Notes under the pieces: model-generated
Database searches by the model: none
What the model saw: the letters and a program-made list of their open reading frames with translations, nothing else
What the model was told of the DNA's origin: nothing
Shown: positions 12,308 through 16,003 of the stretch, piece by piece
Layout: the number at the start of each line of letters is the position of its first letter
Numbering within the stretch: position 1 is the stretch's first letter
Made by a program: the position numbers and the translations under genes
IMG/VR virus record: IMGVR_UViG_3300002143_000235
Location: 62,001-126,000 of that record
Strand: one strand, 5' to 3'
DNA length: 64,000 bases

Positions 12308-12370
12308 AAGACAAATATAGAACTTTTTTTCAATCTTGATTTCTTTAAATGAAAAAAAATATGAAATAAA

Positions 12371-12602: not shown

Positions 12603-12944
12603 TTACAATTTAATGAGTTCTTCATTCTTTATTGCCTTGCGTACATAACGCATAAGTGTGATTGCTTTAATTTCTGCATCAAATGAAGTAGTTCCTACGT
12701 CTTCTCTGTCATTCATATCAACAGTAAATTGATATGAACCATCAGATGTGTTGACTTGATAATAAAGTACTCCTGCAATAGCATGTGTAATCTTTGCCAT
12801 GTTACCTGCTGTAACAATGGTCTTCAAAATGGTTGTAGTTTCCATTTGGCTATATTTAAAATTTAGCGGAACACACCTGGTAATGATCCAGTTACAACTT
12901 CTCGTTGTGTATTCTATATGTTTATCTATGATAACATGTTTCAT
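12603..12944 (-). CDS. Hypothetical protein
   Basis: 113-aa ORF. Confidence 0.6.
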   Translation of the reverse strand: MKHVIIDKHIEYTTRSCNWIITRCVPLNFKYSQMETTTILKTIVTAGNMAKITHAIAGVLYYQVNTSDGSYQFTVDMNDREDVGTTSFDAEIKAITLMRYVRKAIKNEELIKL

Positions 12945-13733
12945 AAAAATCTTGCATATTTTTTTTCATGAAACGTTTTACATTAGGATGTGTAATATTT
13001 AAAATTATTGAAACTTTACACATCCAACCAATTTTTAGAAAATCAATTTTTGAATTTAAAATTAATTGAATCCTGTTATTAATTTTTTCTAGTTTATCTT
13101 GTTCTTTTTTATTTTTTTCTTCTCTAGCTTCTCTGATTTTCTGTTCTTTATAATATTGTTTTGTAAGAAATTCAGAAGGTATTTCAATTTTTTTTTTATC
13201 AAGTAATTGTAAAATTTTATTAATAGCTGTATAAATATTATTATTAATATCTTTTGCTGATATTCTTAATGTTTTCCATCCACTACCACGTAAAAAATCA
13301 TCACGTCGTTTATCAATTTCTATAACTTTTTTTTGTAAATGTGTACTTCCATCAATTTCAACACATAATTTATATTCAGGAAAAGCAAAATCAAGTTGAT
13401 ATATTGAAAATTGCATTTGATGAATCCAACCAGTTATATTATACTCTGTAAGATATTTTATCATTGTTAATTCTGGATAACTTATTTTACTACTATGATT
13501 AAGTAAATATGGAACTTTATCTGGATTGTTTTTTAAATATTCTGTCCTTGATTTTGATATTTTTTGTTTATGTTCTTCTGTTAATTTACGACCAGTATTA
13601 AAAATTCGTAATTTTTGTTTTTTTAATTCTAATTTTATAAAATAATTAGGATCACTTTTACAATTTGGTTTATGACCGCCTAATTTTTGTCCTGAAAAAA
13701 TATTAAATTACAATATTCACATATATGACTCAT
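12922..13733 (-). pseudogene. Homing-endonuclease-like gene (Zn finger + NUMOD3 + DUF559/Vsr-like nuclease) frameshifted at a T6 run
   Basis: ATG 13733 gives MSHICEYCNLIFF then stop; the -1 frame continues SGQKLGGHKPNC...GRKLTEEHKQKIS...LDFAFPEYKLCVEIDGSTH, in frame with track ORF 12922..13464. Confidence 0.7.
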
Positions 13734-13794
13734 AGTTTTTATTATTATATATCAACTATGAACTCTTTCAAAATTAATTAGTAGATTGCTTGTG

Positions 13795-13866
13795 TTCTCC
13801 CACCTGGAGTCGAACCAGGTTCCATAGATTAAAAGTCTATTGCATCACCACCAATGCTTTGAAAGA
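13795..13866 (-). tRNA. trnK: tRNA-Lys(UUU)
   Basis: Cloverleaf, ATAGA-CTTTTAA-TCTAT, T-arm CCTGG-TTCGACT-CCAGG; CCA not encoded. Confidence 0.9.
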
Positions 13867-13878
13867 TTAATATTAGTA

Positions 13879-13917
13879 GCATTGGTGCGGTGCTTTAACC
13901 AACTAAGCTACGAGGTC
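13879..13917 (-). pseudogene. 5' half-tRNA remnant
   Basis: GACCTCG-TA-GCTTAGTTGGTTAAAGC-A-CCGCAC, with no T arm or acceptor 3' strand. Confidence 0.55.
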
Positions 13918-13971
13918 ATTATAATGCCAACTCCGTAACTTAATTACTGAGCTGGCTAAATCTTATATGTC

Positions 13972-14208
13972 TTAATCTTTTTCATTTTTGTATTGTGTTT
14001 TTCTGTTGTGTTTCCAGCTTTGGTACATTCTTTGTTGCCACCGCATTAATCGTTTGTTTGAACTTTTTGCCCATCTATTTGGTATTAGTGGATAAAATGC
14101 TATACATTCATCCCAATAGATTGGATATAATTCGTCCATAAGAATACGTCTGTACTCTTTCCCATTTTGTGCCAAATCAAATTTAGCACGTCTTTTGTTG
14201 ATACTCAT
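13972..14208 (-). CDS. Basic 78-aa protein embedded in the tRNA operon
   Basis: Arg/Lys/Trp-rich, ends SWKHNRKTQYK. Confidence 0.65.
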   Translation of the reverse strand: MSINKRRAKFDLAQNGKEYRRILMDELYPIYWDECIAFYPLIPNRWAKSSNKRLMRWQQRMYQSWKHNRKTQYKNEKD

Positions 14209-14261
14209 TGTGTTGTAGGTTTAATTTACCTTACAACGCATCAAATTTCTTTTTCATCTTG

Positions 14262-14348
14262 GGTGTATAACGAGAATTGCACTCGCAAGCCCTTTCGAGC
14301 ACTTGTTTCACAGACAAGCCAGACTAACTAATATCCTGCTTATACACC
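14262..14348 (-). tRNA. trnH: Atypical tRNA-His(GUG) with long variable arm
   Basis: G-1:C73 8-bp acceptor GGTGTATA/TATACACC, CTTGT-CTGTGAA-ACAAG, 15-nt variable arm with GCTC-GAAA-GGGC, T-loop TGCAATT. Confidence 0.75.
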
Positions 14349-14358
14349 ATATATTTAG

Positions 14359-14431
14359 TGGAGAGAAATGGATTTGAACCATTGACCAGAGTCTCCACGA
14401 CTCCTGCTCTACCAGGCTGAGCTACCTCTCC
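14359..14431 (-). tRNA. tRNA with Pro(UGG)-position anticodon but atypical loop CGTGGAG
   Basis: Full cloverleaf; G33 instead of U33, G1-C72 instead of the bacterial Pro C1-G72. Confidence 0.65.
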
Positions 14432-14440
14432 AATTTAATG

Positions 14441-14513
14441 CTCCCCAAACTGGGTTCGAACCAGTGACCTTACGATTAACAGTCGCATGCTCTACCAACT
14501 GAGCTACTGAGGA
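14441..14513 (-). tRNA. trnN: tRNA-Asn(GUU)
   Basis: Cloverleaf, TGCGA-CTGTTAA-TCGTA, G73. Confidence 0.92.
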
Positions 14514-14574
14514 ATATAGCGTCTATGTAGAAGTGCACTTCTTTGTGAGCCATAGACGGCTTTGTTCACATTTG

Positions 14575-14649
14575 TGCGTCCCCAGGGAATCGAACCCTGA
14601 CCGATGGTTTTTCAGACCAACGTGCTCTACCAGTTTACACCAGAGACGC
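14575..14649 (-). tRNA. trnF: tRNA-Phe(GAA)
   Basis: Cloverleaf, TTGGT-CTGAAAA-ACCAT (one mismatch), A73. Confidence 0.88.
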
Positions 14650-14673
14650 ATTTATTATACAAAAATGTCGCGG

Positions 14674-14746
14674 CACACCAGGCAAGACTCGAACTTGCAA
14701 CCAACGGTTTTGGAGACCGTCATTCTACCGATTGAACTACTGATGT
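14674..14746 (-). tRNA. trnW: tRNA-Trp(CCA)
   Basis: Cloverleaf, ACGGT-CTCCAAA-ACCGT, G73. Confidence 0.92.
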
Positions 14747-14751
14747 GTATT

Positions 14752-14784
14752 AAAAAAAAAAATCCCAGCTTTTCGGCTGGGATT
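14752..14784 (-). terminator. Intrinsic terminator 5 nt upstream of tRNA-Trp (candidate attenuator 3:4 hairpin)
   Basis: AATCCCAGC-CGAAAA-GCTGGGATT followed by a 9-T run. Confidence 0.85.
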
Positions 14785-14817
14785 CAAATTTCTTTTAGAT
14801 GTGTTTCGTTTTCTAAA

Positions 14818-14895
14818 CTAAATTAATTCTTCCGAGCCTGAGTCGTTTGACCAGAACTTAAAATTGTTATTATTATGTTTATTAAATGTTTTCAT
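14818..14895 (-). CDS. Candidate 25-aa leader peptide MKTFNKHNNNNFKFWSNDSGSEELI
   Basis: ATG at 14895 in A-rich context (CAAAG-ATG), TAG at 14820-14818, 33 nt before the terminator. Confidence 0.6.
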   Translation of the reverse strand: MKTFNKHNNNNFKFWSNDSGSEELI

Positions 14896-14906
14896 CTTTG
14901 TAATGT

Positions 14907-14955
14907 TATATATGTAATTTTTGTTTCTCTTTCTTGTAATTATAAGACAAATATA
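14907..14955 (-). promoter_or_regulatory. Tandem promoters (TATATTTG at 14948-14955; ATATATA at 14907-14913) upstream of the leader peptide
   Basis: Match the two motif classes recurring across the window. Confidence 0.55.
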
Positions 14956-15015
14956 CAGAAAAGTTTTTAATTATAAAAATTTATTTTAAAAACTTTTCTA
15001 TAAAATGTTTTTTTG

Positions 15016-15102
15016 AAGCGCAGGGCCGAGTCGAACGTCCACAAGGGTTATAAGCCTACCATGGTTATGAGCCACGAATGTTACCAATTACATCACCGCG
15101 CA
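15016..15102 (-). tRNA. Atypical tRNA with CAU anticodon and 19-nt variable region (Met-like)
   Basis: CGTGG-CTCATAA-CCATG; 1:72 T/T mismatch; T-stem has one mismatch. Confidence 0.6.
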
Positions 15103-15212
15103 GAACATATAGAAGCAATTCCTCACATCTTTATGTTTATTTGTATGTTATATATCTTTTTTTAAAAAAAGATTAATATGTTTTAAAAAATACATTAAAC
15201 TTTTTAATTTTG

Positions 15213-15278
15213 TAGGGGTGGATGGAATTTAACCACCGACCTTTCATTCGAACACTCTAACAACTGAGCTACACCCCT
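15213..15278 (-). ncRNA. tRNA-like RNA with truncated anticodon arm
   Basis: Perfect acceptor AGGGGTG/CACCCCT, D and T arms present; anticodon arm only TTC-GAAT-GAA. Confidence 0.65.
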
Positions 15279-15355
15279 ATAATATTTTTCCTTATACGTT
15301 TGCAACCATATAAGGCGACAAGTTTTCGACCGAAGTCTTCGTATCCATTGTTACT

Positions 15356-15427
15356 AATGATAAATCAGATTCGCACTGACGTCCTCCCGCTTTCTACAGG
15401 CGCTCTACTAGACTGAGCTATTACCCC
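15356..15427 (-). ncRNA. tRNA-like RNA with 5-nt anticodon loop
   Basis: D arm GCTC/GAGC, CCTGT-AGAAA-GCGGG, T arm GTCAG-TGCGAAT-CTGAT, weak acceptor. Confidence 0.55.
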
Positions 15428-15464
15428 TCAAACATAATCAATGAACCGTTTGTTCATCCTTTTG

Positions 15465-15540
15465 GACACATGACAGGATTCGAACCTGTACTCCCTAGCC
15501 CAAATGGCGCAGAGCTCTATCCAGTTGAGCTACATGTGTC
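15465..15540 (-). ncRNA. tRNA-like RNA (Arg-type D loop) with irregular anticodon arm
   Basis: 8-bp GACACATG/CATGTGTC, D loop AACTGGATA, T arm ACAGG-TTCGAAT-CCTGT; no 5-bp/7-nt anticodon arm. Confidence 0.65.
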
Positions 15541-15665
15541 TTTTCATGTAAAAGCTATTCACATACGATTTCGATACTTACCGTGTCAGCAGTTGTCTTA
15601 ATCCGCACGAACTCTTACATTACTTTTGTATGCATACAAATTCAGATCCTGCAGGACTCTGAACA

Positions 15666-15739
15666 AAAGCAACATATGGCTCTTTACTCCATATATCTCT
15701 GACTCCACGTCAGCACTTTCCAATTTAAGCTAGATGCTT
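15666..15739 (-). ncRNA. Cryptic cloverleaf with CTGAC-GTGGA-GTCAG arm and non-canonical T loop
   Basis: Acceptor AAGCATC/GTTGCTT (6/7), D arm GCTT/AAGT, ATATGG/CCATAT T-position stem. Confidence 0.5.
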
Positions 15740-15740
15740 C

Positions 15741-15831
15741 GTGATAACAAAGGGACTCGAACCCAATTCCCCCGGCTTGCTCTCCCCTGCAAAGGGTACC
15801 ATAGCCAGTGTGCTCCATACACCACTTATCA
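15741..15831 (-). ncRNA. tRNA-like RNA with 25-nt insert in the anticodon arm
   Basis: TGATAA/TTATCA acceptor, GTGT/GCAC D stem, CTGGCT/AGCCGG stem enclosing CCCT-TTGC-AGGG, GGG-TTCGAGT-CCC T arm. Confidence 0.5.
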
Positions 15832-15884
15832 ATCCCCAGGTTTCGAACCCTGGATTATATTGGGGTAATTAGTCCCAATTTTTG

Positions 15885-15963
15885 TGGCCGGAGTAGGATT
15901 CGAACCTACGACCACAGTTCCGGAAACCCGGTAACTGTTGCTCTCCCACTGAGCTATCCAACC
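15885..15963 (-). ncRNA. tRNA-like RNA with extended anticodon arm capped by a GUUU tetraloop
   Basis: Acceptor, D and T arms canonical; ACAGT-T-A-CCGG-GTTT-CCGG-A-ACTGT. Confidence 0.7.
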
Positions 15964-15995: not shown

Positions 15996-16003
15996 CAAAT
16001 ATA
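15996..16003 (-). promoter_or_regulatory. TATATTTG promoter heading the tRNA-like array
   Basis: Matches the Bacteroidota -7 consensus, 32 nt upstream of the first element. Confidence 0.6.

Follow-up and report, generated by a model that had tools for sequence, protein, structure and literature searches.

Why should a phage place a small open reading frame and a strong transcription terminator directly in front of a block of its own tRNA genes? How phages regulate their tRNA genes is largely unknown, and why they carry them has been debated for about 50 years (codon compensation or counter-defence; PMC10264068). The locus examined here lies in a 64-kb stretch (64,000 nt; hereafter, the window) of IMGVR_UViG_3300002143_000235, a roughly 314-kb uncultivated myophage. 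The window has a GC content of 33% and encodes a tail sheath, a DNA polymerase and an NAD-dependent ligase. A direct DNA comparison with GenBank phages returned only generic tRNA matches, and tblastn of a 78-aa ORF embedded in the tRNA array against cultured phages, together with a scan of genome contigs, found nothing. Searches with the exact leader pattern and with the 227-aa upstream protein found only the same phage twice in IMG/VR. Apart from a DUF559 endonuclease and a NUDIX hydrolase, Pfam and PHROGs gave no function for the neighboring ORFs.

We first asked whether the arrangement is real. All coordinates given in the preliminary description were confirmed on the minus strand. The promoter (14948..14977) consists of TTTATA (14977..14972), 16 nt, and then TATATT, with the element TATATTTG at 14955..14948, about 50 nt upstream of the leader ATG. 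This element appears to be of the Bacteroidota type (TAnnTTTG at -7, with a TTTG or TTG element near -33). It is followed by an A-rich 5′ untranslated leader (14896..14947) without a Shine-Dalgarno motif; only 1 of 44 long ORFs in the window has such a motif, so the host does not rely on it. Both features probably point to a Bacteroidota-like host. The leader ORF (14818..14895) has 25 codons, runs from the ATG at 14895 to the TAG at 14820..14818, and gives MKTFNKHNNNNFKFWSNDSGSEELI. Window genes are intact in the standard code and no suppressor tRNA lies in the window, so read-through of the TAG by recoding was set aside. The intrinsic terminator (14752..14785) has a stem-loop at 14785..14760 with 10 pairs and a 6-nt loop (-15.5 kcal/mol, z = -4.5), followed by 11 T (14762..14752). 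After AATAC, that is, 5 nt after the T run, tRNA-Trp (CCA; 14672..14746; 67 bits) starts at 14746.

The block continues on the same strand with tRNA-Phe (GAA; 14574..14649; 57 bits), tRNA-Asn (GUU; 14440..14513; 65 bits), a Pro-like tRNA (UGG; 14358..14431; 52 bits) with G instead of U at position 33, and a doubtful 85-nt tRNA-His (GUG; 14261..14345) with acceptor mismatches and an extra arm, which was called only by ARAGORN and had no Rfam hit. The conserved 78-aa ORF (14208..13972) follows, and tRNA-Lys (UUU; 13794..13866; 49 bits) is the last gene of the block. Two features had been missed or misjudged. First, tRNA-like genes, most of them with aberrant anticodon arms, also lie upstream (15963..15016), so that the leader sits in the middle of an array; they lie behind a second TATATTTG promoter at 16003 and have no leader, and transcripts from their promoter may also enter the attenuator. 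Second, a further promoter motif proposed at 14913..14907 (ATATATA) lies inside the 5′ untranslated region and is not conserved in relatives. No TAnnTTTG or strong sigma-70-type site lies between the terminator and tRNA-Trp, so the block depends on read-through.

Could the codon content of the leader be an effect of AT-richness, given that Asn, Lys and Phe codons are common in such DNA? Codons 2-15 specify Trp, Phe, Asn, His or Lys in 13 of 14 cases. Among 840 ATG ORFs of 15-60 codons on both strands of the window, the mean was 3.9 of 14, the next best ORF had 10, and this ORF alone had 13. Only 2 of 127,918 14-codon windows in six frames reached 13. The sensor codons 4-15 (14851..14886; F N K H N N N N F K F W) can all be decoded by the anticodons of the tRNAs downstream (GAA, GUU, UUU, GUG, CCA). 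About half of the matched codons in positions 2-7 belong to an N-terminal motif shared by all leaders (see below) and are not independent evidence of tuning, whereas positions 8-15 match in 8 of 8 cases. Codon 3 (Thr) has no cognate tRNA in the block. The enrichment is beyond chance.

We next tested whether leader codons co-vary with downstream tRNA content in related phages, a check suggested in the preliminary description. The 78-aa ORF gave access to 11 IMG/VR loci and 69 metagenome loci at 33-67% identity, most of which (45 of the 82 loci scanned) carry tRNA arrays on the same strand. A mechanical scan for strong terminators upstream of tRNAs together with the nearest upstream ORF, followed by a motif scan and a sensitive scan, found about 20 distinct units with the same order of promoter, small ORF, terminator and tRNA block. 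In these units (loci are designated by L and a number) the peptide mirrors the block that follows. QQQQQ precedes four tRNA-Gln in L116 (also L150 and L151), and His-rich leaders precede two tRNA-His in L132 and L135. In L110, LLLVLCVLVL precedes Cys x2, Val x3 and Leu x6, with Leu codons covering four of the five Leu anticodon types, and FEFNFDAAEAD precedes Asp, Phe, Glu and Ala. NIHTTINNTI.NTKKHN precedes Asn, His, Thr, Lys and Ile in L117 and L105, RQFQFVFFVQQ precedes Phe, Gln, Val and Arg in L119, and long leaders precede 12-15 tRNAs in L122 and L113. Two of these were confirmed directly.

Over 15 nonredundant units, the fraction of residues 8-20 whose amino acid has a tRNA in the unit's own block was 0.78, compared with 0.30 for other units' blocks (z about 8.6; 0 of 100,000 permutations reached the observed value). 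At the codon/anticodon level the fractions were 0.72 and 0.26, respectively. The units were recognized partly by eye after the mechanical scan, although the two that did not match were kept in the statistics and did not change the result. The signal was confined to the ATG frame (0.68 vs. 0.30 and 0.25), and in 12 of the 15 loci no other small ORF scored as high as the leader against its block. No such unit occurred in 94 unrelated phage tRNA loci (the control drew on 96 unrelated loci retrieved with a tRNA-Trp T-arm pattern, none of which had a unit of this kind), and the small ORFs in the tRNA region of the cultured phage T5 do not mirror their tRNAs.

The leader of the window is homologous to that of the L102 family (MKTFNKH vs. 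MRTINIH; the first 22 nt align). That family senses Arg, Thr, Ile, Asn, His, Met, Ser and Trp and precedes exactly those tRNAs. The window leader has swapped Ile/Ser/Arg/Met codons for Phe/Lys/Asn codons, in line with its different tRNA set, and has no Ile, Ser or Arg among its first 15 codons. TAnnTTTG elements (TATATTTG, TATCTTTG, TACATTTG) lie 45-60 nt upstream of most of the aligned leader ATGs, several with TTGACA about 17-20 nt further upstream, and AACTTTTCTGTATATTTG in the window closely resembles AACTTTTGTATATTTG in L102.

Do these leaders contain the alternative RNA pairings expected of an attenuator? When the terminator 3′ arm was removed, most leaders folded so that the terminator 5′ arm paired with a segment directly after the sensor codons (region 2), as in GGTCGAGCT with AGCTCGACC in L117, CCCGAGGG with CCTCGGG in L113, and GGTCAAGG with CCTTGACC in the L124 group. 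Because the alignment of the L102 leader family is too conserved for within-family covariation, we compared duplex energies between units with those of dinucleotide shuffles. Summed over 14 units, the best duplex between leader and terminator arm was -152.5 kcal/mol, compared with -90.8 ± 6.9 kcal/mol in shuffles (minimum, -114.7). In most units region 2 begins within about 20 nt after the last sensor codon, whereas in the long leaders of L113 it overlaps the end of the sensor run. It lies before or across the stop codon in all but L158, where it follows the stop by a few nucleotides. A ribosome stalled in the sensor would therefore leave region 2 free, and a ribosome running to the stop would cover it. 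Most relatives also have a 1:2 helix that sequesters region 2, in which AACATA in codons 5-7 pairs with TATGTT next to region 2; this explains the conserved N-terminus M-[KR]-[NT]-[LIF]-x-N-[IH] at the RNA level.

The window is structurally the weakest member of the family. Its region 2 (AGGCTCGGAA; 14830..14839) starts 11 nt after the last sensor codon and ends 10 nt before the stop codon, a spacing typical of the family, and forms a duplex of -9.7 kcal/mol with the terminator 5′ arm. The segments proposed to pair in the preliminary description, GGCTCGGA (14838..14831) and TCCCAGCC (14782..14775), are present, but this 8-10 nt duplex alone is within chance (P = 0.38). It becomes notable only as part of an extended hairpin (14775..14838; -13.9 kcal/mol, z = -3.1, 2 of 200 shuffles as good), which forms when the terminator 3′ arm is absent and whose 3′ strand overlaps the terminator 5′ arm. 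The competing upstream hairpin that had been proposed, CTGGTC-AAAC-GACTCAG (14854..14838), is marginal, appearing only as a 4-bp stem in the predicted folds, and the 1:2 pairing of the window is no better than shuffles (-3.1 vs. -3.6 ± 1.4 kcal/mol). This pairing is not strictly required for attenuation.

Taken together, the locus is most likely a ribosome-mediated (leader-peptide) transcription attenuator whose regulated genes are tRNA genes, an interpretation in which we have considerable confidence although translation of the ORF, termination and stalling-dependent read-through are inferred from sequence, and the coupling of transcription to translation that attenuation needs has not been shown for the unidentified host. 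In the proposed mechanism, transcription starts at the TATATTTG promoter and a ribosome translates the 25-codon ORF. If codons 4-15 are decoded quickly, the ribosome runs over region 2 to the TAG, the terminator hairpin forms and the transcript ends 5 nt before tRNA-Trp. If any of those codons is decoded slowly because its charged tRNA is scarce, the ribosome stalls upstream of region 2, which then pairs with the terminator 5′ arm in the extended hairpin; the terminator cannot form, and RNA polymerase reads into Trp-Phe-Asn-(Pro-like)-(His)-ORF-Lys. Because the products are the very tRNAs that relieve the stall, the circuit would be a closed negative-feedback loop matching phage tRNA output to decoding demand.

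The natural trigger may be the codon demand of an AT-rich phage, depletion of host tRNAs, or both. The preliminary description had suggested that the same attenuator responds to host anticodon nucleases, so that replacement tRNAs are made when those of the host are destroyed. In favor of this, the leader senses Lys, Asn and His codons, whose tRNAs appear among known nuclease targets (PrrC for Lys; colicin E5 for Tyr/His/Asn/Asp), phage tRNAs can rescue infection from tRNA-targeting defenses (PMC10264068; PMC11464382), and any depletion of the sensed tRNAs would trigger read-through. However, leaders in relatives enumerate up to 14 different amino acids and essentially every tRNA in their block, including Gln, Val, Leu, Ala, Cys and Gly, which fits general supply-and-demand control better than a response to one nuclease. 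The nuclease reading is thus possible but doubtful and, with no defense or nuclease context examined, remains conjecture.

Three further explanations are very unlikely. The terminator could be an ordinary boundary within the array, the ORF a chance product of AT-rich DNA and the tRNAs made by constitutive leak-through or processing; the low GC content, the weak alternative pairings of the window and the tRNA-like genes upstream allow this. Against it, the ORF is the single extreme among 840, leader composition tracks tRNA content across some 20 units, including GC-containing codons for Ala, Gly, Arg, Val and Gln, the ORF, its start and its N-terminus are conserved, and the promoter sits between the upstream tRNA-like genes and the terminator, which a mere boundary would not need. 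The ORF could instead encode a functional micro-protein with its own promoter and terminator, as its conservation and N-terminal motif might suggest, with a codon usage that resembles the neighboring tRNAs for unrelated reasons. However, outside the first 7 residues the peptides share no sequence and differ completely in composition (poly-Gln, Leu/Val/Cys, Asp/Phe/Glu/Ala), which is not how a protein family evolves, the conserved N-terminal codons coincide with an RNA helix, and the downstream tRNAs would be left without a promoter. A translation-independent sensor pairing with anticodons in the manner of a T-box, although compatible with the anticodon-complementary triplets and the terminator/antiterminator alternatives, is disfavored because no T-box or other such Rfam family matches the window or 8 relatives, the triplets form one uninterrupted frame that opens with a conserved ATG and closes with a stop codon at or near region 2, and up to 20 consecutive different codons are sensed, which no known tRNA-binding RNA does.

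The leader-peptide attenuators of amino-acid biosynthetic operons in Proteobacteria and Actinobacteria (trpL, hisL, pheL, leuL, thrL, ilvL) likewise have a promoter-proximal short ORF enriched in regulatory codons and an intrinsic terminator before the regulated genes; they use mutually exclusive 1:2, 2:3 and 3:4 pairings read out by ribosome position, of which 1:2 and 2:3 are weak in the window. In the present case the regulated genes are tRNA genes instead of biosynthetic enzymes, so the products act directly on the sensed step; the leaders are multi-specific (5 amino acids here, up to 14 in relatives), list the tRNAs of their own block, occur in a phage, use a start without a Shine-Dalgarno motif, and have no sequence or Rfam relationship to these families. 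The only Rfam matches in the window region (E up to 1) or in 8 relatives were to tRNA, apart from a single tmRNA in L113. In the attenuation of aminoacyl-tRNA synthetase genes (pheM-pheST in E. coli; a His-codon leader upstream of hisS paralogues in bacilli, PMC2965389), a component of the translation apparatus is also controlled by ribosome stalling at its cognate codons, but these leaders control a synthetase for a single amino acid in a cell, whereas here the tRNAs themselves are controlled, for several amino acids at once, in a virus. T-box riboswitches also sense the supply of a specific tRNA and switch between terminator and antiterminator to control translation-related genes, but they bind uncharged tRNA directly through a specifier codon and a conserved T-box sequence, without translation. 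Large phages carry tRNA arrays that supplement or replace host tRNAs (PMC10264068; PMC11464382); the abstracts of these two papers do not mention cis-regulation of the arrays. We found no description of leader-peptide attenuation of tRNA genes in the literature searched, which excluded most subscription journals.

A broader reading, which we regard as probable, is that these units form a previously undescribed class of "codon-barcode" attenuators. In a widespread group of uncultivated large phages, probably infecting Bacteroidota, each tRNA sub-operon would be preceded by its own promoter, a leader peptide whose codons list the tRNAs of that sub-operon, and a terminator, so that each group of tRNAs is transcribed only while ribosomes are short of them, and the leaders would be re-tuned codon by codon as tRNA genes are gained and lost. 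These would be the first attenuators known to regulate tRNA genes, and would extend attenuation, so far tied to amino-acid biosynthesis and a few synthetase genes, to tRNA genes and to viruses, with a multi-input (OR-gate) leader design. What the phage measures would be decoding speed at the sensor codons, and its tRNAs would be made on demand rather than constitutively. Such leaders offer compact sensors of the supply of specific tRNAs for synthetic biology and a sequence-only way to divide tRNA arrays into transcription units and to predict which tRNAs are functional. In the window, the Pro-like tRNA is not sensed at all, as the leader has no Pro codon, and the doubtful tRNA-His is matched only by a single His codon in the conserved N-terminus.

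On the minus strand of the window, five tRNA-like genes were found upstream of the leader (15016-15963), located behind their own TATATTTG promoter (16003..15996) and without a leader ORF. Most of them showed aberrant anticodon arms. One has a 14-nt hairpin in place of the anticodon loop (15963..15885), one is truncated to 66 nt (15278..15213), and one is an 88-nt "Met" scoring only 32 bits. These genes may be decoys, pseudogenes, or non-decoding tRNA-like RNAs. Downstream of the leader on the same strand, the "Pro" tRNA (14358-14431) has G instead of the near-universal U at position 33, and the absence of a Pro codon in the leader is consistent with this Pro-like tRNA not being an ordinary decoder. 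The 85-nt "His" tRNA (14261-14345) has acceptor mismatches and an extra arm and obtained no Rfam hit; similar long "His" tRNA-like genes precede tRNA-Trp in L101 (one of the related loci, numbered L101-L182). In addition, a sequence resembling the 5′ half of a tRNA (acceptor, D arm, and start of the anticodon stem) was found at 13870-13925 (minus strand), directly upstream of tRNA-Lys (13866..13794), and may be a remnant of a disrupted or split tRNA gene.

The 78-aa ORF (13972-14208, minus strand; motifs YPIYWDEC and MYxxWKHNRKT) was present in about 80 related metagenomic and viral loci (L101-L182) and, in the 45 of these loci that have tRNA arrays, it was embedded inside them. It belongs to no Pfam or PHROG family, and no match was found among cultured phages or in genome_contigs. 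Its function is unknown, but its position suggests a role connected with tRNAs. Next to the tRNA array, an ORF of 180 aa with a DUF559/Vsr-like endonuclease fold (12922-13464, minus strand) is possibly a mobile nuclease of the kind often found in phage tRNA regions. The promoter at 14948-14955 shares the extended sequence TATATTTGTCTTAT with a second promoter at 12312-12319 (both minus strand), the latter preceding a NUDIX hydrolase gene, which suggests a common promoter class, perhaps with shared timing, for tRNA and nucleotide-metabolism genes.

Several relatives carried tRNA genes with a CUA anticodon (amber suppressors, labelled Pyl by ARAGORN; L113 10374-10445, L127 1982, L145 11265, and L146 6227), and L113 also carried a tmRNA gene (15310-15729). 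Thus, some members of this phage group may recode TAG, although the window showed no sign of recoding. In two phages, Lys-rich mini-ORFs (MKFKYKYKKR and MKMKMKYKRKKKR; L117 6245-6277 and L105 4322-4363) were located about 46 nt upstream of runs of four tRNA-Lys genes, and the ORF in L117 was followed by a GC-rich hairpin without a T run. These mini-ORFs could be internal, Lys-specific control or processing elements, or could have arisen by chance in A-rich DNA. Finally, two leader-terminator units were found in tandem in the related locus L150 (2269-2391 and 3163-3306), separated by one tRNA-Met. Both had codons matching the same large Glu/Asp/Asn/Tyr/Cys/Ile block, which suggests serial attenuators.
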